Positions 9,301-61,605 of a DNA stretch of 64,000 nucleotides are shown piece after piece. The position numbers and the translations under genes were made by a program. Source of the stretch: Ylistrum balloti (taxonomy: Eukaryota); assembly GCF_031769215.1 (NCBI RefSeq), contig NW_026781968.1, positions 620,001-684,000 on the forward strand, in the 5' to 3' direction. The notes under the pieces are model-generated. The model worked only from the letters and a program-made list of their open reading frames with translations, did not search any database and was not told the DNA's origin. The stretch's first letter is position 1, and each line of letters starts with the position of its first letter.

Positions 9301-10314
9301 ATTTTTGTTCATTAAATTATATAGCTACTGTAAAGAATTTTGTCAAAACTTTAAAAAATAAATCCCTATTAAAATTGTTTAGGCACTGTTTGGCTTCATA
9401 TTTTTCAGAAAGTTTTGTAATAGTTGGAGATTACTATTCAGACAGTCTCAACTTTGTGTCTATAAATCAAAACTAGCTCTGCATTAAGTAAGATTTCCTC
9501 AGTGTCAACACAGATGTTCATGTTGTGGAGTCAGGTATTCAGAATCAGATTTTTCATTCAAAGGTGTAGTTTCAGTTTAAATAAGTGATACTCCAGCATT
9601 TTTTTAGTTGGTAAAAATTACTTTCATAAATTAGCAAATAGAGGAAATCTACTGTTTTTTGAAAGGTTAGTTATGTACTTTATGAGCAAAAAGGTTCATA
9701 AACACAGCAATACTATTTAACTAGAACTTCTTCGCTAAAGCGTTGCAAAGAGATATAGGCAATTCCTTATCAACGTATTATACATCCTTGTATAAAATTA
9801 CTAAACATCAACAAACATCGGCTTGAAAAGGTTGGGCACAACCCTACATATGAGTAACAGTCATGTAGTTGAGGGATAGTTATCGCTTTGAGTAGTCAAT
9901 TTGTTACCCTAATACATGGTCAGATACACATTAAGTTCGTTTAAACATTTGAAACAAAAAATTGTACCATATTTTTTTTATATAGCCTATTGGGCGCTTT
10001 CTGTAATTTGCACTACCACAGAAAGACTGTCTCTTGTAAATTCAAAGTTTTCATAAATATATATGTTTAAGATTCATTTCGATCGGCAGATTGTACAGCA
10101 TCTGTTACTATGCAGTCGTATAGTGCCAGGAATACATGGGCCCCGGGGGACTGACCACAGAAATATCTTGGAATAGGTGTATGTGAATCAGTGTATGTCA
10201 TGCACTTCTAAAATCTAGATGTGCAACAAAATATATAAACATAGAAAACCAATTTACCGTTTCTCTTCCTTTAGAGGAAGGGGAAGGATAAATTTCCCCT
10301 CCATCTGAAGCCAT
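3333..10314 (-). CDS. EXOC4: exocyst complex component 4 (Sec8), 5' part; gene continues beyond the left edge of the window
   Basis: Ten GT-AG exons join in frame: 10314-10258, 9143-9014, 8112-8050, 7565-7427, 7120-7032, 6534-6458, 5846-5711, 5159-5005, 4291-4221, 3471-3333 (1056 nt, 352 codons). Translation includes [72 protein letters not shown] and [10 protein letters not shown], collinear with remembered human EXOC4 ([75 protein letters not shown]). Confidence 0.96.
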
Positions 10315-10606
10315 CTTGTAAAGTAAACCTGTTTTTTTTCTACTTCTCGATGTTTTCTTGCAAACCAACCCACTTCCGCTTATCACTAATTTATCTTCCA
10401 ACATGAAGAGTTCCGATCAGTAAAGCGATAAATTACAGGCATAGAAATATCATTTAACTAAATCGTCGAGTGAATTAAATTGAATACTGACTAAAGACAA
10501 TATCATGTTACACAATATGATACACTTATAATGATAATGTAAAAGTGAATGTATATACAATGATACATATGTTATCGACTATTTTGCACCGTTTGCATGG
10601 TTCGAG
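10315..10606. promoter_or_regulatory. putative bidirectional promoter between EXOC4 and the iRhom-like gene
   Basis: The EXOC4 ATG (10314, minus) and a plus-strand first-exon candidate ending at a strong donor (TTAG|gtgag, 10643) lie about 300 bp apart, head to head. Local CpG content looks higher than in the flanks. Confidence 0.55.
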
Positions 10607-11529
10607 ATGGAAAATTGTCGTCTGCTTCAGAGCAAGGCCTTAGGTGAGATTTAACGGAGGGTAATACTTTTGATGTTAGCCCTATATATTGTACATTAAG
10701 TATATATATTTTTCATACGAGAAACATATTAATATTTTTATGCTAAATTTAAAAAAACATTAAGGGGCATTTTCTTAGCTGCGGGCACGCCGGTAGGTAC
10801 ACAGTACGTCGCATTAATTATTTATTTCAATTCAACAGAACGGATGATTCGTTTGATTGATATATATGTTAATATGCATGACTGAAAATATATTGTATTT
10901 GTTTCAAAGGATTCACCACAACTATAACAAAAACGGAAATTTTATTTGTTTTATCGCGGAATTGGAATTTTATTTTAAGTCCTAGTTTTTATGTTTTATT
11001 TATTTTAATTATTGTTTGGCTTAATTGTATCTAAATTTAAATCTGAATAAAAAGATGTTATATATATATATATATATATTGACTTGAGTGTCCTTTGCAC
11101 AACAAAACAACCCTAGATGGTTGACATGATTGGCCTAAAATGAAAATTACCAAATTTTTCAAATGTAGCCTATACTTGATCATCCTTATCATTAGCAATG
11201 TATTTTTAACTGTATAAGTGTCTTTGATTATGTTTTAAAGCATTGATACTTAAAGAGCTATGTAGACATTTTGTTTTGTATATATACTGCTTTGTTGTTA
11301 GAATAACTTCATTGTTGACTCGGTTTCTAGGTAAGTATTTATTATAAGACATCCAAAAACAAAAGATTTCTTGTTGAAAGAGAAAGGAATCTAGAGAATT
11401 TCTAAAAGTGTTTCTAAACTTTGTAACAATTTTTGCACTTCTTGACATTCCCATATTATATGGATAACTGTTTCAGGTTCAGAGTGCACATTGAGGGGAG
11501 ATAACTGTTCTAATCTCAAACAAAAATGA
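10607..11529 (+). other. candidate 5' leader exons of the iRhom-like gene carrying a spliced uORF (10607-10643 and 11477-11529)
   Basis: ATG at 10607, donor at 10643, acceptor tgtttcag at 11476. The joined frame reads MENCRLLQSKALGSECTLRGDNCSNLKQK* with the stop at the last three bases before gttagt. Confidence 0.4.
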
Positions 11530-12159
11530 GTTAGTAGTTATTATGTGGTGAACAACTCTGTATTGGAACCACTGAAGTTTTATTTCAGTGGTGACAAGAA
11601 ATGGCATTTTGCAATATTTCCCCCAGGTTTATTTGTCAATGTCCTCAAATAGCATATTCCATTTTTTGGTTCCTGATGAAATGAGATTAGACTTTATTAA
11701 TGTTTCATAGAAAAATTAAGGACCATTTCTGTCCTTAAAAAAAGGTTTTAAGTTATTAGGAATGTAAGGATAACATAATGTAGATCTAGGAAATTGTATG
11801 TTATGTGAAGAAATACATTTTTTTACTGAGGAAAGAAGATTCTGGTATTATAAAAAGGCATTAACATAAAACTGCTTTGACATTTGTGATAAATCCAAAT
11901 TGTTCAAATAAATCAGTAATACTCCCATGATCACCAAACCTGCTTAAAGGTTATACAAGCTAGAATATTGACACATATATGTTCTCAATTCAATATTTTA
12001 CCTTATATAACTAGTATAAACTAGGATAACCTGAATTGTCAAAATTTGTATTTCAGTTTCAATATTTCACTTGTAAATTAATGTATCAGCCACTGGACCT
12101 TGTTAATGAATATTGAGCAATGCTAATGTAACAGAGGTCATATATATTTTCAATGTCTC

Positions 12160-12480
12160 CGTTAGGATTTGATTCGGGACCTTTAGCTGCTAGTCTGACG
12201 CTTAACCCATCAAGCTACAGCGATTTCTGTAGCCAAGCAGTATATTGTGGCTGGTATTTTACATACTCCCCAGCCAGGAAACTACCGGTACCTGTCCTCG
12301 AGATTCAAGTTTCCAGGTGTTACAACAATGCTTGTCGATGTAACTCTAAATATCACTCCAGATTTCCTACATGGGCCCTAATGTAGCATGGATCCTTATT
12401 TATTTCATTGTCTCTGCTAGAATTTCTACCCCAAAACCTCTGGCTACTAGTCTGACCATCAACCGATGGAGTTAAAGAAA
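12160..12480 (-). mobile_element. tRNA-derived SINE-like fragments (two degenerate heads about 250 bp apart)
   Basis: The minus strand reads TAGCTTGATGGGTTAAGCGTCAGACTAGCAGCTAAAGGTCCCGAATCAAATCC (degenerate A and B boxes) at about 12225-12165. A more eroded copy (GGTCAGACTAGTAGCCAGAGG) lies at about 12470-12420. Confidence 0.45.
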
Positions 12481-15112
12481 AGTTCTTTCTAGTGGAACTG
12501 TCTAAACCAAGGTTACACTAAAAGGTTTCCATTAAGCTGAAAGCTGCCTTTACAAAACATAAAATACATTCATAAATATCTATTTATGATAATTCCAAAA
12601 CAATTTCAGATTCTCATTTTCACCTACAATTTACTGTTAAATGGACTTTGTTGATTAACTGAGTCATGCTTAAGTTTTCTGTTTAGCTTCAGTGTAGATG
12701 TAGAGCTTTATTTCAAAGTGTTTAAGCAGCTATAACCAAACCTGGATTATGAAACATTTTATAGGAAATAGGCCTATTAACATTCCTTCCACATGTAAAA
12801 TATCAACATTTAGGTGTGTTTATTACCTTATTATGCTGTCTACTGTCTACAGCTCACTGGCTATCTACTTGCTACTTTTGACTGCAAAAAGGATTTAAAG
12901 ATGTTTGGAAATTTTGAAAGAAAAACGGTGACCGACTTCAGTGGTTTAGAATACTTGCGATGGAAAAGTATCTTACATTGTAATTTCCAATGATCTAGAT
13001 ATATCTCATTGTATACTGTAGTAAACAATGGACAACAAGAATATGGAAGCAGTATGCAATATAACAATGGTTTTGTTGTAAACTTTGGCAGGACTCTGTC
13101 ATATAAATATTGGATTCCATAAATCTTACTGGCGAGGATTTGAATGCTTGAAATAACACCTGTGTATCTGGAATTATTTCTATATATTGCATTTAAACAT
13201 TTTTCATGCAATAGTGAGTAAGCAGCAGGTAGTGAGTGAAAAGTAGTTTGGTATTTGTTAGTTTTGAGCCGAAATGAATCAAATGACATTGAAAAAGACC
13301 ATTTTCATCCAAGTATCCCTTTCAAGTGCCATACAGTTGAAATTAGTTGAAATACATGTAAGTATTGTAGCTTCAAAGGTTACGATGAGTTCACCTTGAT
13401 GCACTTATGTGTAAGTATCAGATACACTTTGTAGGTTACAAGTCAAATAAAGGTTCTTTTAATTCAAAGACCAACAAAATCTGAAATGGTTACAATTAAT
13501 TGCATTAAAGACTTCCAATTGATGGAATAAAGTGTTTAAAATCATCACAACCCACTTTGAACATCGTTCATCAAAAATAACAAAATCATCAAGTTTTTAC
13601 ATTATCTTTTAAGACCATGGTAATGGTCTTTATTTCACTGGAAAGCTGAAGGGAAACATAGAGTTTGATTTTGGAGGTCAGACTTAAATATAGAGATCAA
13701 GTATGCACATCTACAGTTTATAATGAAATCGCTATTTATGATAAATCTTATACACATTGAGATGCTGAATTACTTTTCCTGATACGGTCATAAATCGGTA
13801 ACATACCAGTTATTTCAGCAATTAATTAGAGAAAGCATTATTTATCAATACATACATACAATGTGACAAACTGCACATAGCCTTTGCTAAAGTGTTTATG
13901 ACAATGGGTCACTTAGTCATTGAGATAATGTTTAAAGATTTTTACACACTTGACACATGTGGTCATGAAAATTGTGCCAGATACATGTACTCATAAGTTG
14001 TGTATATCATGAAGGTTGTTTTCCCAAAAAGAAGTTTGGAACTAGAACTGATCAAAGTACAGGACTTCAGCATCAAAGAGACAAGATCCTTAATGTTAAA
14101 TGCTTTAACAACCATAGTTTCATAAGAGAAATGCTAGAACAAAATTTTAAGGCTGAAGTAGAAAGGGATTCAAGTATCACTGGGACCAATTTGGAGGTAC
14201 AATGGAATCACATTGTGATGGATTCATTGAATAATTGGCAAAGTCTCATCCATTGTAGCAAGTCATGTTTATCTTGAAAGTCAAATAATTTTTGGAAAAG
14301 GCATGATAGTATACGTTTTAAGCCGTGTAATTACCCCGTAGCAATCTAGGTATCAATAAATTTGCACATTGAACACTGATGCTTAGATTAAACAGAAAAT
14401 ATGAAGATACCATTACTTATGTGTGAGAAACGAGTGGCATAAGAATTGAGGTAAACTTATTATTTCTATTATTTATAGAAATTCAATGACATTCAAAGTG
14501 ACTTTAAACTTCTGAGATAGGTTTAATGACAAACAGAGTAATTTTAAGGCATAAATAATCTAAAACTTACAGTAATTTTTGTTGCAAAACTCATGTTTTG
14601 CTAATATAATCAAACATCAATGCTTGTGCGATTGCTGTCTCAGGCACAGCCCCTTTCTACAGTAATTTTTGTTGTAGGACTTTTCAATATCGCAATCCTC
14701 AGTAATCAGCAATAGGTTAAAAACTAATTCTTAGAGGTTTTGTGGGAATCATTATTTATTTATTTATTTTCATTTATTTAGAGTATAACTGAATTACAAT
14801 TTTCTAAAATGTTTTGATAATAATTTGACACAGTTTGAAATGGTTGATCAAATATGATTAGTGTAACAAAGCTGCTGCTGGAAGTAATCATGTGATATTA
14901 CATGTAATGTTGAAATTAGTGTCCATCATGTACAAAATTACATTGAGATTGTATATATTATTTCAGATTCTTTTCCATAAAAAGAACTATCTTCATGCTT
15001 CATCAAAGGCAAAGTTTACAAGTTCCCAAAGAAGAATCAGACGACGATAATCAGGCTGATTCATTTTACTGAATTGACTTTAAGTGATCAACACATCCGA
15101 AAGTTTTGTGGA

Positions 15113-18100
15113 ATGGAACATTTTCCTCAGGATCATGATCAGGCCAAAGATGCTTTAGATCAGGTAACATCTTTGTTTTGGTTTTGTTGCCATTAACTTG
15201 TTTGATTGTTGTATAAATAAAGAATAGTTGTAACATTAGATCAATATTAGATATAAAATTGTAACTTTACATCAATATTAGATATAAAATTGTAACTTTA
15301 CATCAATATTAGATATAAAATTGTAATAGTACATCAACATGTGAGATAAAATTGTAACATTACATCAATATTTCAGATAAAATTGTAATGTTATATCAAT
15401 ATCAGATATAAAATTGTATTTTATCTTTATATGTATGCATTCTTTGTTTTATATGTTTTGAAAAATGCATGTTTGTAAGTCAAAAGTGCATAAAGAACAT
15501 ATTTTTTACATTTGTACTTCTTAATACCTACTTTTGTAACAAACTGACACAAGTATGTAGCAATGACAGTGTTATTATTTATCTCATTAATAACTGACCA
15601 TTTTACTTCAATCTATAGACTAAACAGTGTTAATAACAAACCTATAGACTAAACAGTGTTAATAACAAACCTATAGACTAAACAGTGTTAATAACAAACC
15701 TATAGACTAAACAGTGTTAATAACAAACATAGACTAAACAGGGTTAATAACAAACATATAGACTAGACAGGGTTAATAACAAACCTATAGACTAAACAAG
15801 GGTAATAACAAACCTATAGACTAAACAGGGTTGATAACAAATCTATAGACTAAACAGGGTTAATAACAAACCTATAGACTTAACAGGGTTGATAACAAAT
15901 CTATATACTAAACAAGGGTAATAACAAACCTATAGACTAAACAGGGTTGATAACAAATCTATAGACTAAACAGTCTTAATAACAAACCTATAGACTAAAC
16001 AGGGTTAATAACAAACCTATAGATTAAACAGTGTTAATAACAAACCTATAGACTAAACAGTGTTAATAACAAACCTATATATTAAACAGTGTTAATAACA
16101 AACCTATATATTAAACAGTCTTAATAACAAACCTATAGACTAAACAGTGTTAATAACAAACCTATAGACTAAACAGTGTTAATAACAAACCTATATATTA
16201 AACAGTGTTAATAACAAATCTATAGACTAAACAAGGGTAATAACAAACCTATAGACTAAACAGGGTTGATAACAAATCTATAGACTAAACAGTCTTAATA
16301 ACAAACCTATAGACTAAACAGGGTTAATAACAAACCTATAGATTAAACAGTGTTGATAACAAACCTATAGACTAAACAAGGGTAATAACAAACCTATAGA
16401 CTAAACAGGATTGATAACAAATCTATAGACTAAACAGGGTTAATAACAAACCTATAGACTAAACAGGGTTAATAACAAATCTATAGACTAAACAGTGTTA
16501 ATAACAAACCTATAGACTAAACAGGGTTAATAACAAACCTATAGACTTAACAGGGTTGATAACAAACCTATATACTAAACAGTGTTAATAACAAACCTAT
16601 AGACTAAACAGGGTTGATAACAAATCTATAGACTAAACAGGGTTAATAACAAATCCATAGACTAAACAGTGTTAATAACAAACCTATAGACTAAACAGTG
16701 TTAATAACAAACATAGACTAGATAGGGTTAATAACAAACATATAGACTAGACAGGGTTAATAACAAACCTATAGACTAAACAGTGTTAATAACAAACATA
16801 GACTAGATAGGGTTAATAACAAACCTATAGACTAGACAGGGTTGATAACAAATCTATAGACTAAACAAGGGTAATAACAAACCTATAGACTAAACAGGGT
16901 TGATAACAAATCTATAGACTAAACAGTCTTAATAACAAACCTATAGACTAAACAGGGTTAATAACAAACCTATAGACTAAACAGGGTTGATAACAAACCT
17001 ATAGACTAAACAAGGGTAATAACAAACCTATAGACTAAACAGGATTGATAACAAATCTATAGACTAAACAGGGTTAAGAACAAGTCTATAGACTTAACAG
17101 GGTTGATAACAAACCTATATACTAAACAGTGTTAATAACAAACCTATAGACTAGACAGGGTTAATAACAAACATATAGACTAAACAGTGTTAATAACAAA
17201 CCTATATACTAAACAGTGTTAATAACAAACCTATAGACTAAACAGGGTTGATAACAAATCTATAGACTAAACAGTCTTAATAACAAACCTATAGACTAAA
17301 CAGGGTTAATAACAAACCTATAGACTAAACAGGGTTGATAACAAATCTATAGACTAAACAGGGTTAATAACAAGCCTATAGACTTAAAAGGGTTGATAAC
17401 AAACCTATATACTAAACAGTGTTAATAACAAACCTATAGACTAGACAGGGTTAATAACAAACATATAGACTAAACAGTTTAAATAACAAACATAGACTAT
17501 ATAGGGTTAATAACAAACCTATAGACTAGACAGGGTTGATAACAAATCTATAGACTAAACAGGGTTAATAACAAATCTATAGACTAAACAGTGTTAATAA
17601 CAAACCTATAGATTAAACAGTGTTAATAACAAACATATAGACTAAACAAGGGTAATAACAAACCTATAGACTAAACAGTGTTAATAACAAACCTATAGAC
17701 TAAACAGGATTGATAACAAATCTATAGACTAAACAGTGTTCATAACAAACCTATAGATTAAACAGTGTTAATAACAAACCTATATATTAAACAGGGTTAA
17801 TAACTGATGTAACAATGATCTTCCATTTACAACCAGAAAAATACACATATATGTATAACTTCACGCAATCATTTGTATTCCCAATTACAATAAATGGAAC
17901 ATTTTAAATCCTTTTTTTGACTGATGTTTTTTTACAGTTAGCTGCCCGAGCATGAAAAATGAGAGCTACAATACCAAAAGCATATTCATGTTTTTGTACC
18001 ATCAATTCAAAAAAATTAAAACTAGATCATTTTTACCAAGAATAATTTGTATAATATAGAGAAAGGCTGTCCCACACACACACCTATGCTGTTTCTCTTT

Positions 18101-21100
18101 CCAAACTACAGATATGTTGGTCAGTTTTGTGAAAATTGTACCATGATAAATAGCTGTCATACAATCATGAAAATAAGAAATCATACTTAAATGAAAATGT
18201 TGACTTAATTTGGTATTAATTAATTCAGCTTCCAAGAGTAGCTTCTCTAGGTAGTTAATCATTGCCCATTTGAATTTGAAAGAAAATACAAAGTACAGAG
18301 TTTCACCCTTTTCTTTGTTGTACCATCTTACACTTGAAAAGAAATGGTATAATCCTCTCTTTCCATGATTTCCATGTGGCATTATGCATAGAATACCTTT
18401 ATTGATAATTTAAAGTCATCAAAATGAACAAAAAAAGAGAAAAATTATGTTAATGGGTAATTTTTCAATATATTAAATTTGAAGACATAATTTGTGTTGT
18501 AAGAACATCAATGCATCATTAATTAATCAAGTCAAATATAAGGAATCAAACATTCTGGCAAGTTATATTTAATAATTCCAATTAATTCAAAATAATCAAT
18601 ATCCATTTTTCAGTTCTCATGAACAGTCGACAAGTGATTCGTCAAATATATTTACAGTGTTCATTTTATTTGCAGCAATATAAAAACAGTAGTTTAATAA
18701 CAAGCATATTCCATAGCAGAGTACAGCAACCTGAAGATAGATTGATAGACTGTTTACAAGGTGCATTACACCACATCATATCACAAGAATCAGAAGAATA
18801 TAGCAATGTGAAGGGCATACTTGAAAGTGATGATGAAGAAGTTGTTAATTTGAAGAACTTATCAGGTGGAAGTAAAGTTGATCCTTCACTTAATAAAGCC
18901 ACAAATAAAAACCTTACAGGCAACAACAACGTAGAGAAACATCCTCAAGATGATCACATCGAAATTGTAGCGGCTGGAACATGTCGTCTTCAACAAGGAG
19001 TACCCATTCCAGTTGTAATGGATGTTATACTTTCTATAAATAATTCTGCCAATAGAAATGTGTTTCAAGATTCTCCTTGTGAAGCCCACCATGAAAAAGC
19101 TACAGATTTAGATAAGCCAGTATTTATATCACACAAATCTGGAAAGCATGACTTCATAAAGAGAGTTAATAATCGTTCTAAAATTAAAGGTTTTGACATA
19201 ATACATGAAGATTATGAAAAAGCTGAATCAGCCGATCATGTCAAAAGCACACCCAAGGCACTGAGTGATAACAATGGAGACAAAGACCTCAGTAAAGTTA
19301 GAAATGATGCAAGTTATTCTGTCAATACAAACTATTCTGCTAATGGACATGGTAGCTCATCTAACCAAGAAGAAACAAACTTGAAACACAGTGGGAAACA
19401 GGAAGTAACTGATGTAAAATGTGTTGACCTACCTGGAAGCGACACTGATGACAATGGAGTGGATTCTCAAAAGGTTGTTACTAAAGGTATTGTAAAGGAT
19501 GAAGATACTTCTGTCAAATACCAGTTGCAAGAAGAGAGTGACATCATTGGAATAAAGCTGAACACAGATGCTGAGAATCAGTCAAAGAATAAAAGAACTG
19601 ACAGTGATGAAACTTCTGGAAATATCAGTGGACTTTTTGTGCACCCCAGGAAAGACAATGAAGGTGCAGATGAAGTTGAAAAGACCATTTCAATTAATGA
19701 CTCTAAAACACAAGAAAAGAAAATTGAAGCAAATAGGAGTGATCTAGGGATTAGAGATCTGGAGGAGGAAATGAGTAATCAGGAACACAAAATTACAAAA
19801 CTTCCCAGAGTTTCTTTCAAAAATGTTGAAGTTGATGAAGATTCAAATACAGAGGATGAACATAATGTGAGGAGTGATTGTCATGGTGTGAAAGAAAACA
19901 TACTTTTTGCTGAAGATTCTACAAGTGAGGTGAATCATTAACTATTTGCAGTAAATAATACCCTCATTTTATCTTTTTTATCAGACTTTTTAGCAGACTT
20001 CTACAATGAAAATTGTTAGCCAATCATATTGGAATTTTGAAGGGAAATAGTAATCCATCTATATACCAGTTTGTATTGATAAGGAAAGCAATTGAACTTT
20101 TTATCCTTATTTTATTTATAATTACAATTTTATTTTTGAATGACTTTCAATCAAGTATGAGGATGTATTGATTTTGTGTTTCAATATAACATATGTTCAA
20201 TCCCTGTCTTTGTTATCATGTCGGAACTAATTCATAACATTGTTAAGTGAAAGGATAACTCTGTCAATAAAACAGTGTTTTAAGCATTCAATCAGTCTTG
20301 ATGTCAAACAAATAATGATTACTCGTAAATCATGCAATGGTCAAGTACGAGAAAGAAGGTTTTGTTATAGGGCACCAGTGCCTTGTGACTAGTAGCTATT
20401 TCAGTTCAAATAAAATTGGTTAAACTTTAATGTGTATAATATTTAAATGTTAATGATTTTTAGCAGTTTTTATAGCAAGGGTTTTGGTAATTATCAAGGA
20501 CTCATAATTCGCATTTTATTGAACACAATTTATGCTGCACAAGAGTCCATGTCAAAAAAAATCTGGACCAAAACAAATATCTGAAGGAAATATTAAAATT
20601 TGTACAGCAAAAATATTGATTATTTACAATCAAAATTGTTGTATCAGGTTAGCTAAATCAAAATAAAGAATATTTATATATTTCCAGGAGTCTGTGGAAA
20701 AGTTGTCACTGCAGGACTTAGCTTTTGGAATGGATGGCTACAAACATTTCAAATTGTATGCAGAGGTAATATTGATTTGCACAGCTGGTAAATGTTTGTA
20801 TGTATAAAAACCATGTAATTTTCATTTGGTTCCATAAAAGGTTTTACTGCAGTTTTGATTGCATTGTTTATATATTTGATTAACAACAATTATTGTATTA
20901 GCTTGAATTCTTTCCAAACCAAAACAACTATATACTTCAAAATCAAGTTTGCTATGTCCTGTAAAATTTCAGATTGATAAGAATATACGGGTGAATGAAC
21001 TACAGGATGCCAAGGAAGCATTGAAGATGAATTATAATTGGAGAGCTCAACAAATTGATGAAATTATATGTGTTGCTACAGGTGAAATGAAATCAGTAGA

Positions 21101-24100
21101 ATGCAAAGTGTTTATACATTATGTCTCCCAACAAATCTGACAAAGTTTACAAATTTCCATTTGATCGCATATTTACAGATCTTATTTAAGTCTCACCTCA
21201 GTCATACTTCTTTTAACATTCTGTTTCAATATAAAATCACTGAAATTATTCTCCTTGTCTATCATTGGATTTAAATCATATTGGGTCATAATTACAGCTA
21301 CAGAATTTTAATATAATGATTAGTACTTTTAGCTTGTCTGGTGAATCTTGACTGATTTAAAAAAAATATCAAAACAAATATTCATGATGTCTACAACTGT
21401 CATAGATAATTGTCAAGAACAACATAAAATACCAACAGGTTAACATAATCATAATCCAAACTTTAAATCAATAAAACTAGTTCAAAATTTAAACAAAAGA
21501 AAGATTTACATGAAAATATCGGCAAAAAATCTCAAAGGATGTTAAGACCAGGTATTCTGGAAGAGTAAGCATCTTCTGCATCAACGACGATACACACAAA
21601 AGCTATGAATTGATTTTTTCCTGGTTTATGTCATTGTCTGTTGATAATAATGTTTGTATGATTTATCCATTTAAAATAAAGCTAGGAATAAGGCTAATCG
21701 ACATCTATTTCTGATTCACATTGATCAAGACGTGGATGCATCCTGGATTTTTGTTATTTTGATATATCTAAGACTTTATTATGGTATTTTGTAGAATACT
21801 ACAAGAATCCAAAGAACAGCAAGGCAGTGTCTGAGTGGCATGAACTTAAGAAAACTGTTTCAGTGGAGAAGAGAAGTACAGTCAAGAGTAACACAGACAT
21901 TAAGTTTCATCTGGCATCCCTCCATGAACACAGGACAATTTTTACATATATCCTTATTGCAGTTAGTAATGTTTTGCTTTACACACACTTTATATGTGTT
22001 TGGTCACTTATTTGGGATGTGAGAAATGCAGCAAGACAAGGGTAGGTGGATCTTTAGACTCTCATTATAACTGCTATATTATATCATATTACAGTATGTC
22101 ACTTGCAAGATGAAGATTTCTACCAGCTTATCTTATCATCATATATATCAAATATTCTGTTCCTTTGTGCAATACTAGACCAGTTTGATGCTTGTTAGAT
22201 TGCCTGTTGATTCAGCTGTTGTATACCTTATTCTTGAGAATGTGACATTTCTTATTCAGATTGACCAACATTTATATGGTGGGTGTCCTCGATGAAACAG
22301 AAGATGCTAACTCTTGGATTTTAGTTTCTCTGTAGATTTTGGGAAAATATATCACTTTTTCACTAACTCTGAATGATAGAGCAGTAATATTCTTGATACA
22401 TCATTGTAATTGGGATAATTGATTAAATCTTCTTTTGTTTGCCACCTAGATATTGAATTTCTCACTTTGTGCATCTCATGTTTTTATATTATTTATTCAG
22501 TCAAGTACAACCTGATTGTCACATCCTGTGATTGGCTATCAAAATATATGAAAACAAGAGAATGTTCAAATCAATATAGGACAGAAAAATGTACCATTCT
22601 TTTCCTTTGACTTGCACAGATGCAACTGGTGTCAGTGATTGTGACATGCATACTTGGCAAGCTGACATACATAGGGTTAGAACCAAAGTTGGAGCTAATG
22701 ACGGGAGTAAAGACATTTATGGGCACAGAGATGGTCCACAAATGGATTCCACCAAATGTGTGGATTGGGCCCTCTGAGAAATATCTAATCAGTAAGATAC
22801 CATACCACTCTGAATATGATAACTTCTGACTTCTGTTTCCAGTCGTAGTTAAAATTTTTTGAAAACAATTTAAATCCAAAATATCCTTAATCCCTCTGAT
22901 GATAAATCATTTGCAAGATTTTTCAGTTTAAAAATGTTCAGCTGAGTTTTCTCAAATGGTTGTTACTTTGTTTGTTTGTAAATATTAAGAATATATCTGA
23001 TTATTGAACACCATGCAATTTAGTGAGTCACTATTTCTGTTTTATTTTTTTTAACTCATACATGTACAGGTTATTGACTTTAAAGATAAAAAGGAGTAAT
23101 ACTGCATTGATAATGGAGAAACTAAAAAAAAAAAAAAAAAACAATATGTGTTTCTATGTACCCAGACATATTTTAGTTTCTGTGTTGAAATTGTTCTTGC
23201 TTTTATTTCTATGGTTGGAAAAAATTTACATGCAATGCATATTTGAACATGTATAGGTATTGGAGCTCTGTACGCCCCTTGCATGAGAGAAGACTATGGT
23301 ATCCAGATAGATCTGAGTAAAAAAGGCTATAAGAAAACCAGCATACTTGGCTGTTGTGAGGTGGCCAGCAGAAATGTGGCAGGAACTACAACTCAGTCAG
23401 AGTGTGTAAACATCACTAACGGTATGTAAACCTAAATTTATGGAAATAACTTGGTTTTGCAATCGTTAAAAGACTTGAAATTGTTACCTTTTGGGGTATT
23501 GTATATATCTATCTCGACATCAGATTATGATCCCATTTATAGCTGGACAGATACTCAGACTACTTTTCCAAACACAAAATCAACTTTTATGATTAATTAC
23601 ATAACTTGATTATTAGATTATAATATTTAAATTGAACATGTTGTTCATCTGTTAAACATTTTTTGAATAATTTGAATGGTATCCTGATAGGGAAGGAGAA
23701 ACATGGTCGTAATATTTTGTTAATGTACATATCTGGCAGCACAGTGAACCAAAAATATTTTCTCTTACTAAAGTTAAATGATACTGATAAGGTGTTCTGT
23801 TTTATATTCTCAAGATCTGTTACATGTATCTTCTTTTGAATAACTGTGTTACCCCTCTATGTTGTACTATCCTTATGTTATACAAAAGACCAGCAACAAC
23901 TGTTCTCAAGTACAAATGTTGAGTATTAACACAAGTTACAACAATGATAACATGTATGGCCTGAGTATCGAGCTTAACAAGTTACTCCTTCCATGGCCAC
24001 ACCAGGACTGACTCTATTTGCTGTGATCTTACAGTTTATCCTAAAGTAATTACAATCTAATTCTGATAGGGAAAGTGTCTTCTACTGATCTACAATTAAA

Positions 24101-26822
24101 CCGTGAACAGTTAATGCCTCAAAGGTGGAGAGCATGTCCAGCCAATGTTTCACGGCATGATTCTGACACTAAGGTGACCGCAATTAAACTATCTGTCTGA
24201 TAAGCCAGCCGGTCACATTTAACACAAATTATGTTCTACACTTGAGTGACAAATTTCACTATTAACAAATGGGATACATTTCTTTAGAGATTCAATGCAC
24301 GTCAGGTAATCTATGTCACAAGGCCTTCAAATACCTATGTTTATTACATTTCAATTCAAAATTTTATCAATGTTGCCTTATCTAAAATTAAGATTCAGAA
24401 AATAGTCAAATATTTTCATATCAATAAATGATCTCTTATATACATTGATTAAATTGTGGATTAAGAGTGCCTTCAAACTCTTCGAAAAGAAATTTCCCTA
24501 GGAAATTGATGATTTTACAGTATAAGAGTATTCACTGTTTCAGGAGTAGGAGAGTGGAGAGAAGGTGTTGTGTGTAGTGAGCGTCCATCAGGACAGAACT
24601 CCGTTGGTCATGTATTGAAACCTTGCTGTACAGGACTCCAAGGAGAGTGTCAGCTGTTGTCACACAAACATTGCCAGTTTCTGGAGGGAAGCTTTCATGT
24701 CAATGGGCATGAGCATTGCAGCCAAGTATAAAAACAGTTGTTGAATCAAACTTTCATGCACAAGAAATTATGTCTAGACATTGTTTGTTTTGTTGATTTC
24801 TTGATTGCTTAATTTGAATGTTGATACGTAAAGGTTTGTGTCAAATGGATATTAAAGAATTAACAGTATCCTTAGTCTGTACACAAAAAACAATCTTAGA
24901 CTTCTTGAAATAAATTACGTCAAAATAAAAAAAGAAGGGAAAATGATATATGTGGATCTGCCAGAAGGGAAATAACACCTTTTGATACAAATTTCAAACC
25001 ACACAGTTTCCTATTGCTGACTCTCTGTTCATTTTTTCCTCATTAATTTCTGGTTGGTCTTGTCAATATCTAGGTGGATTTGTCCTGATACTATATCCAG
25101 GATATGACATGTCATTAAGAATTAGCATGACCTTTAATTGACTCCATTGACTGTATAACACATTTGGGTAATGTTGAATATTTTAAGCTGGAGAGAAAAC
25201 ACTGAACAAACAAAGTATTATGGTTCTCTCTTTACTATTTGATCACTACAATAACTGCTGAAATTCATTTAAAATTTGTACTAAAATCATGTGAAACCAT
25301 TAACATCTTGTCAAAAACTAGAAATTAATATTTCTAATGTAAACTTTTGTTTATTGGTATATTTTTTAACATAGGATCCCATTGTTTTGCTTCCTGTATG
25401 TTCAAGGTAAATTGTTTGAGCTCAGTGTGTGGGATGGGAGGATTTGAGCCTGACCACACACACCCATGGCTTCCAAGAGACCCTATCCAGTGGTGGAGAT
25501 TGCCTCTGTCTTTAGTCTATCACCATGGGCTGATTCATGCCATCCTTGTAAGCCTTGCTCAGATTCTTCTATTTAGGAAGATCGAACAGACACTTGGCTG
25601 GCTTCGACTCATCATTGTATATCTTATGACGGGTTTAGGTGGGCTGCTGGTGAGTTAAATTGTATAATGGTCAGAACATTTAAGTAAGCATTATCTGTTG
25701 ACTAAAATTTGGTTTTACCACTAGCCAGATAATAATATTGAATAAATATTTTTATCAGGGACTTCCTGAATAGATAGAACTGACCACAGTGGACTTTAGC
25801 TGTAGTTTATCTAATCATCTGTGTAAACTTTCATGAGAAGGTCAGATTCCTTACCTTAATCTGAATTGTCTCTATATATTGATACCAGGTCACTGCTTTA
25901 ATTGTGGTGTGGTTTAGAACAACGGTTGTTGGTATATTTATCTATTTCATAAACGAACATTGGTGATAATATCAATATCTCCGGACATTTAGGGCAGATG
26001 ATTAGACAAGTGTTATGCATCTTACAGAAATCCACTGTCCTCAATTACTAATATATTCAATGCATCATTTATTAATAAAATACCTCAATCATTAATGATA
26101 TATGCTTAATCTACTGTAAGTTTTAAAGTAAGGTTTTGTATCCAGAAACACAACAAATGGTACAACAATAATCAGAATATGTCCTTAATCTGCTGTAAGT
26201 TGTAAGGTTTTGTATCCAGAAACACAACAATTGTAACAATAATACTTACAATACATCCGTGGATGTATTTTTATTTTACTTCCTTGTAAATCTTCCTTTA
26301 CTGAAATTTAAATGAAAATTTTATGAAATGTCAACTACAAAATGAAGTTTTGAATTTGCCAGTTCTGTCTTCCTGTTTCAGACTGCTGCTATATTCAGTC
26401 CCTATATGCCACATGTAGGTGGTACATCGACTGTGTTTGGGATGGCTGGGTTAATCACTGCAGAACTTGTACACTACTGGCACCTTGTCCAAAAACCTGC
26501 TGTGGAGCTGACAAAGATTTTTTTACTTTTAGTCATCTTCCTTATGTGTGGCACTCTCCCATACATTGACAATTACAGCATTGTGTCTGGATTCCTCTTA
26601 GGTTTCTTCTGCTCTGTCTTCTTTCTTCCTTTCATGTCCTTCAGACAGCAACAGAAACATTGCCGAATCCTCCTCCTTTGTCTTGGTGGACCCGTCATAT
26701 TTCTGGTGTATTTTGTTCTGTTTTATGTTTTCTATAGAGTACAAACATTAGAAGAATGCTCAGGATGTAAACTGTTTAACTGTGTGCCATACACAAAAGC
26801 AATGTGTGATAACTTATTGTGA
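15113..26822 (+). CDS. divergent inactive rhomboid (iRhom/RHBDF-like pseudoprotease), about 950 aa
   Basis: In-frame exons: 14967-15163 (first in-frame ATG 15113), 18676-19929, 20688-20765, 20973-21081, 21795-21961, 22620-22791, 23257-23421, 24544-24725, 25407-25649, 26382-26822; all phases are compatible. iRhom-like motifs: HRTIFTYIL (cf. HRPYFTYWL), NVWIGPS..LISIGALYAPCMR (cf. NFWVGPS..LIHLGAKFSPCIR), GCC, PCCTGLQGECQLLSHKHCQFLEGSFH (cf. [26 protein letters not shown]), SQVNCLSSVCG, WRL, GTLPYIDN, LPFMSF, CVPYTKAMC. The exact start codon is uncertain. Confidence 0.9.
15228..15425. repeat. 31-bp tandem repeat, about 6 copies
   Basis: Unit ATCAATATTAGATATAAAATTGTAACTTTAC, period 31 (15241 and 15272), decaying to the right. 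Confidence 0.9.
15609..17804. repeat. 29-bp intronic minisatellite, about 75 copies
   Basis: Consensus AATAACAAACCTATAGACTAAACAG(T/G)GTT repeated head to tail, with recurring point variants and a few 27-bp units. Confidence 0.98.
21540..21600 (-). mobile_element. Nin-domain-type SINE fragment (reverse copy)
   Basis: AGGTATTCTGGAAGAGTAAGCATCTTCTGCATC is the reverse complement of the GATGCTTACTCTTCC..GCACCT core I recall from molluscan Nin-domain SINEs, and it is complementary to the copy at about 22290. Confidence 0.5.
22170..22400 (+). mobile_element. Nin-domain-type SINE copy
   Basis: Contains GGGTGTCCTCGATGAAACAGAAGATGCTAACTCTTGG. The upstream segment TTGCCTGTTG..TTGTATACCTT..GAATGTGACATT..GATTGACCAA recurs at about 54797-54870. 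Confidence 0.55.
26107..26245. repeat. short intronic tandem duplication (2 copies, period about 79 bp)
   Basis: TAATCT(A/G)CTGTAAGTT..GTAAGGTTTTGTATCCAGAAACACAACAA..ACAATAAT occurs twice. Confidence 0.8.
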
Positions 26823-31741: not shown

Positions 31742-33767
31742 ATGAAGCAAGGTAAGATATCATTTAAAAGTAACATGTGTATATTAACATATGTAGATAT
31801 ACTGGATACAAATACCACTTGATATCAAGCGAACAACTATATGAAAACTGGATTGTACGTAAACATTAATATTTATTTGAACATTTAATAATGCTAAGCA
31901 AATAAAACACTCACATTTTCTACAAAGAGTTAGTGGATATAGTACAGTGTATAATTATGACGAAACAATACCCTAGTATTACTTCATTTTTTGTTACATG
32001 ATATTATCAATGTTCTCTCTTTTTTATTCTCCGCTGCATTTTATGGACTATCTGCCATTTTGCAAATTTCCTATCTGATTTTTGGAGAAGTTGTAACTGT
32101 TTTTAACATAATCGTCAAAGCTCGCTTCGTAATAAATATATTGTCTTTGAAATTGACTACATAACCCATCAGCTATTTTTTCCTATTTTCTGTTACAGTA
32201 AGTGCTCTCAGTTATTTACTCGTCATTGTCTCCTTCCTGGTCTGTCTTCTCTCGCTCGTAGTGGAGACAGCACCTACCCCTGGATACACGGGGGTATGGA
32301 GAAATCCTTGCGAAGACACCACACCTTCTTTTGAACCCTACAATACAACAAACCAAGAGAAATCAATGGTTTTAAGCGATATCAATACCAATCTCAATGA
32401 AGCAGAAAACATAGCAACCGACATTAAGAATGAATATGTAAGTTTAGTTATACCTGTACGTTGTAGATGTAACATAGTATTTCTCGCTTTAATCTGAGAC
32501 AAATTCATACAAGCTATCAATATGTTTCGGCGATACTTAATTTGTGGATCATTGGTCATCCTTTATAGTAAAGACATCACATAGTAATCTTCCAGAGTCA
32601 TCTGTAATATTCTACAGTGTATATACTTGCTATGGTATGTTATATATGACTTGCTATTTCACAGTATGAAACAAGGCTAATGACTATGTGAAAAATATAA
32701 TCTTGAACGTTTAACATATTGATCTACATAATACAGTACATTTTATAATATCTTGGGTACTTATGGATATAACATTCGGTTTCAGAGATTGCATCGTGTT
32801 GCAAGTCAAGTATCTAACGAGACATGTGTGTCCAACTTTGAGGATAATCTAGACAATATATACTTACACGTTCCCGGATTTCCGGATCTAAGCACGTATT
32901 TCGTTGGTTCCGACGCCATCGCTATCTGCGCAAATGTAAGTGTTCTTCTTCTATTACCAATGCTATGTTTACCAATAGGTTTGATTTGAACACAGTATCT
33001 TTCTATATGTAGAAATCAAACACCATCAGAATATCATAAAGATTTTTTGTTATTGTGATGTGTTTGCTTTTTTAAAAAATTCCATTTCGTGGAAGTATGC
33101 ATGTCGGTTTAACATGAAAAATAAATTATGTACCCTAACCAAGAAATTTCATTTTTGTTTTTATCAATGCTCATACATTTCTTCATTAATCGTATTTAAA
33201 GGGATTCGGTTTTAATCTTCAAAAGTAGTTTTCGATATGTTTCGCTAATATGGCGGCTTTGAGTTAAGGTAAATAAGGCATTTTCCCATGAATCATGCTT
33301 CCATTATTAGATGTGTTCGACTACCATGCTTGCTTTTTAAATCCTAGTCCATTGTTGTTTGGAAGTTAAATTTGTGAACAAATTACAGCAGTGAATAAAC
33401 TATATTATATAATTATATATTGTTGTTACAGATTTCTGCGGCATTGCTACATGATTACAAAAACCTGGTTCGTGTTATGATTTACCTAGAAGAAACCATC
33501 CAGGAAGAACATGATGAAAGCTATGAACAACAGTTGAAGAATCTACATGATGCGATCAAGGGGGTCATGTGTAAATTTCACGTGCTTGAGCAGCCCTGCG
33601 GCCTGGAAGAGCAAGGTCTAAATGTTACCGACATTATCAAACAATACAAAGTATCCCGTCAAAATGAGCGTGATTACCTGTTGATTAGAGATACAATCAT
33701 ACTTATGCGTGGCCTTCATAAAAGGTACAATACATGTAATGCATTGTATAGTAAAACCTCCGGATAA
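31742..33767 (+). CDS. secreted long-chain four-helix cytokine-like protein 1 (IL-6/LIF/Unpaired-like), 244 aa
   Basis: Exons 31742-31751, 32199-32437, 32786-32935, 33432-33767 (phases 1,0,0) with strong splice sites. Signal peptide MKQVSALSYLLVIVSFLVCLLSLVVETA; WRNPC motif; four amphipathic segments (SMVLSDINTNLNEAENIATDIKNEY; AALLHDYKNLVRVMIYLEETIQEE; YEQQLKNLHDAIKGVMCKF; ERDYLLIRDTIILMRGLHKRY). The gene model is solid; the family call is inference. Confidence 0.8.
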
Positions 33768-59227: not shown

Positions 59228-61369
59228 TTATCGAACCTGGAGTCGCATAACTTTTGTAAAGTCAAGTATATAGCTGAGAGCTGCTTCCGTTTCGAACATT
59301 TGTAGCATTATGTTATACATAGTTCCGAGTACATAGAATACTCGGTATTTCGAATAAAATCGGACCTTTTCGGGGTTCATCCTTTCTGGTGTCTGCTGAC
59401 TAATCTTTGCACCGTAGTACATTTTTGCCTGTAAATAAACCAAAGGAAACATGTAATTAAAATAATTAATATCGCTGTTTGATTTAATTACCCTTATTTG
59501 TCTTATCACTGATGAAAATTTATTTAAAACATTCACCAGAGTGAAAGTATCGGTCAAACTCTGTGATCTCTGTATTTCTTTTATAATCAAAAATATGTTA
59601 TTTCTATACTGATTTCATCATATACAGCAATGTAAAAGTCACGGCCCTACTGTAAAGCATCTCTTTACCACCAACATGGAGTGTCTATACATACATGCAG
59701 TTACTCCTCAAGATAATAATTCTATTACTTTAAGTAAGCTTATATTTAACATTTTAAATAACAGTTTATTTTCTTGAATATCTTTGTTTAAAAAAATTAA
59801 TAAATAAAAACAAGAATGAACACACAATCGAAACCCCAAATTAAATGATTGCTTTGATAGAAGACATACAACATTTGATAGAATTCCACTGTATACAGTA
59901 TAGATACGCTAATCGTTGTCGAGAGTTTACCTAGTATATCATAATACCGCTAGATGTCCAGACCAATCTAGTACAGTTAAATATATACTCTGTATTTCGA
60001 CTGGTGTTAATTCATTTGTGTTCATCCTGTTATAGACCCACCTCCTTTTCCAGTCCAAGGATGAGCTCGTCCAACTGGGGAACAATGACGCCATTCAAGG
60101 AACAATACAGGGAGGACCCCAAAGTGCAGTCGACGTCACAGACGGCCTCGCTTCCACAAATATGTCGTTTTTCAATAGCTAGAAGGTCAGTCAGGTTTCC
60201 CCAATGGTAACGAAGTACTTGGATGACGTCAATAAGCAATTTCTATAACATTAAATGAACATCGTATGTGTGTATATATAGCGAGAGACAGACATAAGTT
60301 AGCAGGAACTCCCATGTCAACTCAACCGTAAAAAACAAACAAGAAATATTTGTAGACTTGTCACAGTTATCAATATGTACTAAATATATATTATACTTAA
60401 ATATTTCTTTAAAGAATACATTAATGATAAACATGAGTATGGACTCATAATTGATTATAACAAAATTCACAAAGAAATAAATCATTTTTAATTCAGTGAT
60501 ATACTGATGTCCGATTCATGCTTCTTGCTTATACTATACTTCTGATTAGGAAACTAATACGTGATGGAATATCTGAAATGTATTTTCTTCGTTGTAATTT
60601 TTATGCATTTTGACACAATGGTTAGAAAAAGATAAAATTATTCAAAATACCTTGTTAAACCTTTTCTGCTTCTTGATCATCATGACTTCGTTTGATGGTG
60701 ACCGGATGAAATCTCGTACATTCCAGTTATTAACAAGATTAAACGAGAAGTCTAAGCAATCGTCTGGTATCACGTCATTATTATCTTTACACTGAAAAAC
60801 ATAAATAATACGTGAGTGTTAAAGTTGTATAAAATGTTGAAATAAGTAAATAACTGAAGGAAAATTCTATGATACTCCTTCAAATTCATTCGTTATTTGT
60901 AATTCTCAAAAGTTAGAATTAAAATGCTACTTACATGATTTAATACAAGACGTTCCAGAGAATTTCCAAGAAATTTCACTAGAGGTATTGCCGTTTTGGA
61001 TACACTTTTCCAGAATCGGAAATGCAAGGATGCCGACCCTCCCAACCTAAGGGAGGACAATTGAGACCTTCCATCCGTGTAAGAATTTTCTGATGACACC
61101 ATATCTGAATTTAACGCCGTATTAGTGTATGACTTGGGTGATGGAATGGACAATCTCTGATCTGTATCAACTTCTGTGTTTGGTTGGATTTCCATAACGG
61201 ACAACTGTGAAATTCTGTCTGTATTCTCATCTCGTGTGCTTGCGGTTGTCTCGGAGAAATTTGGTGGAAAATTGTACTTGTCTTCTGTATTCTTCTTTAT
61301 AATTGGTATCGAGAATCCTGATGCTACCAGAAGCAACTCAACAACCAACTCGATTATCAAAATATTCAT
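59228..61369 (-). CDS. secreted long-chain four-helix cytokine-like protein 2 (LIF/CNTF/CLCF1-like motifs), 325 aa
   Basis: Exons 61369-60935 (acceptor at 61375), 60791-60651, 60242-60042, 59428-59228, all phase 0 and all open. Signal peptide MNILIIELVVELLLVASGFS; Ser/Thr-rich pro-segment; helix-like segments FWKSVSKTAIPLVKFLGNSLERLVLNH, KLLIDVIQVLRYHWGNLTDLLAIEK, VIVPQLDELILGLEKEAKMYY, RFYSKYRVFYVLGTMYNIMLQMF (FxxK motif). The gene model is solid; the family call is inference. Confidence 0.8.
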
Positions 61370-61449
61370 TGGCTTCTGAAAGGAGAATTTTATTGAAAGG
61401 TGGAAAAAATAATAAAATTGTTCAATCTGTAATGCATCACAAAGTACAT

Positions 61450-61480
<31 letters not shown>

Positions 61481-61605
61481 AAAAAAGAAAGGGAGAAAAA
61501 AGGAAAAAGAAAGGAAAAAAGAATGATGTAGAAGTAAAGAAAGAATGGAAGGAAAAATAAAAAAGAAAGAAAAGGGGAAAAAGGGAAGGAAAAAGAAAGA
61601 AAGCA
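61450..61605. repeat. polypurine (GAAA)n-type low-complexity tract in intron 1 of cytokine-like gene 2
   Basis: About 150 bp almost entirely A/G on the plus strand, including a run of GAAA units. Confidence 0.9.

Follow-up and report, generated by a model that had tools for sequence, protein, structure and literature searches.

A bivalve gene family whose product is predicted to adopt a long-chain helical cytokine fold

The scallop Ylistrum balloti carries, on contig NW_026781968.1, a gene for a 325-residue protein that is probably a secreted ligand resembling the long-chain class-I helical cytokines. The stretch of DNA analyzed, referred to below as the window, comprises 64,000 nucleotides (positions 620,001 to 684,000 of the contig), and the gene occupies positions 61369-59228 of the window on the minus strand, with four coding exons. 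Its spliced product is identical to the NCBI entry 'uncharacterized protein LOC132544042' of the same species. The description of this locus as an expressed and constrained gene for a cytokine-like ligand, belonging to a bivalve-restricted family, leans on a predicted structure and is held with moderate confidence. An initial annotation had taken the protein for a LIF/CNTF-like cytokine with an FxxK receptor-binding motif. The long-chain cytokine fold has been retained from that proposal, whereas its LIF/CNTF-specific part has not, because the motif is unconserved and the fold matches are tied between cytokine families.

The C-terminal domain very probably has a long-chain class-I helical cytokine fold, judging from an AlphaFold (AF2) model of residues 108-325. 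The model was built from six sequences, with the protobranch clam Solemya velum represented among them, and is numbered as residue minus 107. It has a predicted local distance difference test score (pLDDT) of 73.9 and a predicted template modeling score (pTM) of 0.75. Four long helices, A to D (model residues 6-41, 85-114, 129-157 and 181-217), run up-up-down-down with long A-B and C-D crossovers. The A-B link has 43 residues and contains two short helices, the B-C loop has 14 residues, and the C-D link of 23 residues closes with a short helix at model residues 171-179.

The model was compared with 48,161 Protein Data Bank (PDB) representatives using VIA-align, differences in Z of less than about 1 being treated as ties. 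Helical cytokines fill ranks 1-23 of this list with near-full chain coverage. They include IL-11 (Z 15.5, 161/165 residues aligned with a root mean square deviation of 2.5 Å), CLCF1 (Z 15.4, 174/178, 2.8 Å), placental lactogen (Z 14.6, 166/183, 3.8 Å), LIF (Z 14.6, 172/172, 4.2 Å), OSM (Z 14.0, 164/169, 3.1 Å), IL-27 p28 (Z 13.9, 173/191, 4.1 Å), IL-6 (Z 13.7, 151/157, 2.7 Å) and CNTF (Z 13.7, 149/150, 3.1 Å). Growth hormone (GH), interferons, IL-23, leptin, IL-12, EPO and G-CSF follow with lower scores. The first protein that is not a cytokine is a ZIP transporter at Z 8.5, and ferritins are found at about 7. The occupation of all top ranks by cytokines, the nearly complete coverage and the large gap to the next fold together argue for the cytokine fold, in agreement with the initial annotation.

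Foldseek searches of the PDB gave better rows that were enriched in GH, IL-6, LIF, PRL and G-CSF, with probabilities up to 0.97 and template modeling (TM) scores by target up to 0.74; no E-value for the domain model was at or below 0.001. When the top Foldseek chains were aligned with VIA-align, CNTF scored 16.2 (174/174 residues aligned), prolactin 15.8, IL-11 15.7, G-CSF 15.3 and LIF 15.0. Language-model features point to the same group of proteins. Among the ten best feature neighbors in the ESM Atlas, which score 0.90 and share 194-196 of 256 features, all those bearing a Pfam family belong to the long-chain cytokine clan, the families being LIF_OSM, CNTF, Hormone_1, IL6, IL11, IL12 and IL27. 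The neighbors of a Solemya homolog belong to the same clan, with a score of 0.84.

Relatives of the protein were sought by word-based searches and by running a HMMER profile exhaustively against 1.84 billion representative proteins. They are confined to the Pectinidae (Ylistrum, Mizuhopecten, Argopecten and Pecten maximus) and to Solemya velum, the latter being the sole new source of relatives contributed by the HMMER search. Two further matches (P0006 and P0007), both proteins with internal repeats, were discarded as spurious. Solemya has two tandem paralogs (P0005 and P0011) with about 35% identity to the scallop protein (E = 2e-37 for P0005). They lie about 5 kb apart, at 10001-14846 and 20246-24846 of the extracted stretch of JBHNWI010000006.1, and possess additional cysteines in the N-terminal part, plus one in helix D. 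Alignment of the orthologous proteins to the window follows the exons one by one. The Mizuhopecten yessoensis ortholog has the same four exons, of which exons 2-4 are equal in size to those of Ylistrum (exon 2 is 141 nucleotides long). This ortholog (NEDP02005386.1) has neighboring genes at 1-2881 and 17351-18946 of the extracted stretch, one of them encoding a C-type lectin and the other a 154-residue protein without Pfam domains. The public model of Pecten maximus LOC117340007 has 243 residues, of which the last, ILPLLFLE, form an unrelated tail within the B-C loop. This model, devoid of helices C and D, is probably mis-annotated or truncated.

Six cysteines (146, 157, 221, 227, 231 and 239) are invariant across the family, as are the motifs HF.FWK at the start of helix A, DF.R.PS in the A-B loop, NLT in helix B and ETE.AL.Y in helix D. 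By topology, all six cysteines of the model would cluster at one tip of the bundle, which is formed by the end of helix A, the B-C loop and the start of helix D, and they are presumably paired in disulfides. The proteins of Pectinidae and Solemya constitute a new, fast-evolving and bivalve-restricted family within a known fold class.

The gene is transcribed in at least one scallop, if the most straightforward explanation of the available contigs is accepted. Two Logan contigs of 1,505 and 1,634 nucleotides (runs SRR18313975 and SRR18313976) hold a complete, uninterrupted coding sequence of the Argopecten irradians type, and their proteins (P0004 and P0010) share a 90% cluster with XP_069139843. 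Since in genomes the gene takes up more than 2.1 kb, whereas the contigs have 1.5-1.6 kb and no introns, the latter are most simply assembled mRNAs. As such they support the exon joins and, together with the NCBI protein, agree with the way in which the exons had been joined at the outset.

The two parts of the protein have evolved under different constraints. Between Ylistrum and the Argopecten-type ortholog, the ratio of non-synonymous to synonymous substitution rates (dN/dS) is 0.14 for residues 111-325 and 0.55 for residues 1-110, at a synonymous divergence of about 1.1. Purifying selection on the helical domain is evident from these coding sequences, whereas the extension on its N-terminal side evolves almost without constraint. 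The N-terminus itself is hydrophobic (residues ~1-20, as read from the sequence) and conserved in the orthologs, so that it can be regarded as a putative signal peptide, and the protein is presumably secreted. The extension that follows (residues ~21-110) is poorly conserved, contains 28% Ser and Thr compared to 10% in the domain, and is predicted to be disordered (pLDDT ~23 in full-length AlphaFold models). The initial annotation had called this region a Ser/Thr-rich pro-segment of about 95 residues. A Ser/Thr-rich extension of about 90 residues is indeed present, but its processing as a pro-segment finds no backing, as no conserved dibasic site separates the extension from helix A in scallops. 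In Solemya, an RK pair occurs five residues ahead of the HF motif. The extension might be cleaved off or might be retained, for instance as an O-glycosylated tether.

The exon structure follows the helices of the model. Exon 1 (60935..61369; this and the following features are on the minus strand) has 145 codons, starts with the ATG, encodes the signal peptide, the extension and most of helix A, and ends in phase 0 with a GTAAGT donor. Exon 2 (60651..60791), which has 47 codons, completes helix A and adds the A-B loop with its two short helices. It is bounded by a CAG acceptor and a GTATTT donor, is again in phase 0, and carries Cys146 as its first residue and Cys157 further inside. The 67 codons of exon 3 (60042..60242) encode helix B, the B-C loop and most of helix C. 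This exon contains the invariant NLT sequon at N208 (60189-60197) and the loop with Cys221, Cys227, Cys231 and Cys239 (60102-60158). Exon 4 (59228..59428) has 66 codons followed by TAA and encodes the end of helix C, the C-D crossover and helix D. The splice sites are GT-AG and the introns are in phase 0 at all three junctions. In the model, helix A extends three residues beyond the first exon border and helix C five residues beyond the third, and the second border coincides with the first residue of helix B. The domain is thus partitioned by the exons into helix A, the A-B loop, helix B with the B-C loop and helix C, and the C-D link with helix D. The four phase-0 exons, including the one of 47 codons, their partition by helices and the four-Cys B-C loop had all been described in the initial annotation, and the splice sites, the LOC132544042 record and the helix borders of the model confirm them. 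A long purine-rich, low-complexity run of the (GAAA)n type (window 61440-61600) begins some 70 bp upstream of the ATG and gives rise to a spurious open reading frame (ORF) of 237 residues reading into exon 1.

Ylistrum, Mizuhopecten and the two Solemya genes have their three phase-0 introns at identical alignment positions (IVAF/CGV, KFKK/ALM and LEKE/AKR, the slash marking the intron). In the Solemya genes these are preceded by a short first exon, closed by a phase-1 intron that interrupts the signal peptide, so that the phase pattern is 1-0-0-0; the scallop genes lack the signal-peptide intron. The layout, being shared by Solemya and the scallops, is therefore older than the divergence of protobranch and pteriomorph bivalves. 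IL-6 genes have five exons, with a single intron located within the signal-peptide region and three in the helical domain (PMC13081863; PMC3271213), and the signal-peptide intron is absent from lamprey IL-6.2 and from skate (PMC13081863). The bivalve genes have the same IL-6/G-CSF-type layout, with five exons in Solemya and the same arrangement minus the signal-peptide intron in scallops, in parallel with the lamprey and skate genes. The IL-6 family gene structure proposed earlier is thereby upheld, and it is conserved in Mizuhopecten and Solemya. Human IL6 would have phases 1-0-0-0, exons 2-5 corresponding to helix A, the A-B loop, helices B-C and the C-D loop with helix D, and a cysteine two residues past the helix-A intron, a mapping that serves here as a lead. 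If it is correct, the introns match those of human IL6 one to one, which would be the best argument for homology. The genes for LIF, CNTF and CLCF1 have two to three exons, compared to four to five in the scallop and Solemya genes. The layout of the bivalve genes thus speaks for the IL-6/G-CSF type rather than the LIF/CNTF type.

The predicted fold is similarly close to IL-11 (Z 15.5-15.7), G-CSF (Z 15.3) and IL-6 (Z 13.7-14.2). The scallop protein differs from these cytokines in that it has no detectable sequence similarity to them, carries four cysteines in the B-C loop, is extended N-terminally by about 90 residues and has a longer helix D. The IL-6/G-CSF/MGF signature, which in PROSITE reads C-x9-C-x6-G-L-x2-[FY]-x3-L, is absent from the scallop protein, and no C-x9-C occurs in it; the cysteine spacings are x10, x5, x3 and x7. 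True homology to the vertebrate IL-6/G-CSF-type cytokines with retention of the ancestral exon layout, combined with a role as the ligand of a molluscan gp130/Domeless-like receptor, is a tentative proposition, and the resemblance might have arisen by convergence.

Several results weigh against a cytokine-like ligand. Pfam gave no match at E-values up to 10 for each exon and for four full-length members of the family, and sequence-profile searches of the PDB with three- and six-sequence profiles found no cytokine. The matches of these profiles to BlrP1 and CTR9 were dismissed as chance. The fold is seen in a single AF2 model based on six sequences, the other four models having mean pLDDT values of 56-65, and full-length AlphaFold prediction on four sequences gave a pLDDT of 38 and was unusable. 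Neither the ESM Atlas's own model (pTM 0.59) nor a shape search of the atlas with the domain model produced cytokine matches; the rows obtained were exclusively of MFS, ferritin and ClpB type, had TM scores by query of at most 0.42 and were uninformative. Furthermore, mostly helical models typically reach a best VIA-align Z of about 14 anyway. No family member was found by HMMER among the 1.84 billion representatives in oysters, mussels, gastropods or other phyla, and a distribution of this kind within the molluscs would be surprising for a ligand of central importance, except if its evolution were very rapid. Finally, the search of Ylistrum runs gave one run of unknown type and none recorded as RNA.

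Many of these observations would suit a lineage-specific secreted helical protein that is not a cytokine, for instance one belonging to the matrix, the shell or the mucus, a carrier or the precursor of another kind of hormone; the fold would then be an artefact of prediction from a shallow alignment or the product of convergence. The lack of a sequence link to cytokines in Pfam and PDB profiles, the patchy distribution, the mucin-like Ser/Thr-rich extension, the moderate confidence of a model built from six sequences and the uninformative matches of the ESM Atlas model can all be read in this way. However, the best 23 of 48,161 chains share one distinctive topology with near-full coverage, and a separate language-model search gives the same clan for two divergent family members. 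The intron positions and phases also fit the IL-6-type layout (PMC13081863). A protein of a different kind is therefore considered unlikely, and a cytokine-like ligand remains the preferred interpretation of the bivalve family.

The intron phases bear on another assignment within the helical cytokines. Interferon genes have the phase pattern 0-0-0-0 (bioRxiv 10.64898/2026.05.30.728932), and the introns of the scallop genes are likewise all in phase 0. If the protein were a class-II cytokine, related to interferons and IL-10 and recognized by class-II-type receptors, the short helix at 171-179 would stand for the extra helix of interferons. Fish and mammalian type-I interferons do match the model, with Z values of 11.3-12.4, but the Z values of class-I long-chain cytokines exceed these by 2-4 units, with nearly the whole of their chains aligned. 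Moreover, the language-model neighbors are class-I families, and the phases in Solemya are 1-0-0-0 rather than 0-0-0-0. A class-II cytokine is thus quite improbable, and the class-I assignment of the domain is preferred.

The initial annotation had also pointed to an FxxK site-III motif. In LIF/CNTF-type cytokines in the strict sense, it would represent a conserved site-III contact that recruits the immunoglobulin-like domain of a LIFR-like receptor. The Ylistrum protein contains FYSK at residues 283-286 (exon 4, 59348..59359, as read from the sequence), within the short helix ahead of helix D. By topology, this position is at the tip that corresponds to the site-III region of gp130 cytokines, next to the end of helix A, the start of the A-B loop and the B-C loop, so that the protein shares with LIF, OSM, CNTF, CT-1 and CLCF1 an F..K at the tip preceding helix D. 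The motif is present in Ylistrum, but it is not conserved in the family. Ylistrum and Mizuhopecten share FYSK, Argopecten has YYSK, and the two Solemya paralogs read IYLH. K286 is kept in the three full-length scallop proteins, F283 and K286 both vary across the family, and Y284 is the sole invariant position of the motif. The conservation of F and K in orthologs, which had been named as a check, thus failed. Among 607 vertebrate LIF, OSM, m17 and CT-1 sequences, F is conserved in 98.4% and K in 95.5% (PMC9601804). Given its composition, a domain would contain about 0.8 FxxK by chance, and residues 190-193 form a second one. The region around FYSK is also of lower confidence, with a pLDDT of 62-64 at model residues 161-180.

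In a structural register, F156 of LIF and F152 of CNTF would fall near model residue 179 (K286), about three residues or one turn past F283 (model residue 176). This register is crude, because it assumes these residue numbers and an ungapped helix D, passes through the region with a pLDDT of 62-64 and is anchored at the alignment ends, where CNTF 183 corresponds to model residue 210 and LIF 180 to model residue 203. The sequence alignments that had been quoted for helices B and D are weak. Helix B has 4/23 identities with LIF, and helix D has 4/14 with LIF and 4/14 with CLCF1 (the LIF and CLCF1 strings being those quoted in the initial annotation); shuffled domains score as high in 8%, 79% and 26% of cases, respectively, and the alignments are considered no better than shuffles.

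Nor does the fold set LIF and CNTF apart. CNTF (Z 16.2), CLCF1 (15.4), LIF (14.6-15.0) and OSM (14.0) are among the best structural matches, but prolactin, IL-11 and G-CSF match equally well. Prolactin, GH and placental lactogen align over 165-182 residues with Z values of 14.6-15.8, and clusters bearing Hormone_1 are found among the language-model neighbors of the scallop domain; these hormones differ from the scallop protein in the cysteine pattern and show no sequence similarity to it. The disulfide pattern that would result from the invariant cysteines also differs from that of the LIFR-binding cytokines, as does the number of exons. LIFR has been reported from cyclostomes upward only (PMC13203501). 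Because of this and the lack of FxxK conservation, the LIF-specific reading is not supported, and a strict LIF/CNTF-type cytokine is very improbable. The pre-vertebrate origin of LIFR-type FxxK site-III signaling, which had been proposed on the basis of the motif, likewise receives no support.

The preferred interpretation, a class-I cytokine-like ligand of bivalves, suggests how the protein might function. A signal peptide would direct it out of the cell, and behind this lie the Ser/Thr-rich extension (some 90 residues, predicted to be disordered) and the C-terminal domain (some 215 residues). Outside the cell, the protein might act as a ligand and bridge the cytokine-binding modules of a class-I receptor of the gp130/Domeless type. 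By analogy with Unpaired in flies and with the IL-6/G-CSF-type cytokines in vertebrates, such bridging would then activate JAK-STAT signaling. The tip, which appears to be stapled by cysteines and carries the invariant Y284, is a candidate for a third receptor contact.

The Drosophila Unpaired proteins (Upd1-3) are regarded as secreted, IL-6/leptin-like ligands of Domeless that signal through JAK-STAT and have extensions beyond the helical core (see PMC13203501). They are the likeliest functional analogs of the scallop protein, which is also an invertebrate and putatively secreted protein with an extension beyond its helical core. No sequence relation to Unpaired turned up in the searches, in which no direct comparison with Upd was made. 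To our knowledge, the accepted helical ligands of JAK-STAT receptors outside vertebrates are essentially limited to the insect Unpaired proteins, and no four-helix cytokine described from bivalves or lophotrochozoans was found in the literature searched. In molluscs, an IL6R/gp130-like receptor, JAK and STAT have been reported, with no known ligand (PMC13203501). The bivalve family may therefore provide a concrete and testable candidate for the ligand of this receptor. Its intron layout bears on the question of whether class-I helical cytokines predate the split between protostomes and deuterostomes. If the family were truly homologous to the vertebrate cytokines and its members were ligands of the mollusc receptor, this type of gene would be placed in the bilaterian ancestor.

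The window contains a second candidate helical-cytokine gene at 31742-33767, about 26 kb away and on the plus strand. Its last exon (ORF 33423-33764) gives ESM Atlas hits with a score of 0.91 to cardiotrophin-2-like, CNTF and Hormone_1 clusters. Paralogy with the family described here was rejected, the hhalign probability being 0.2. ORFs of multi-pass membrane character appear in the ORF list at 25347-26822, also on the plus strand.

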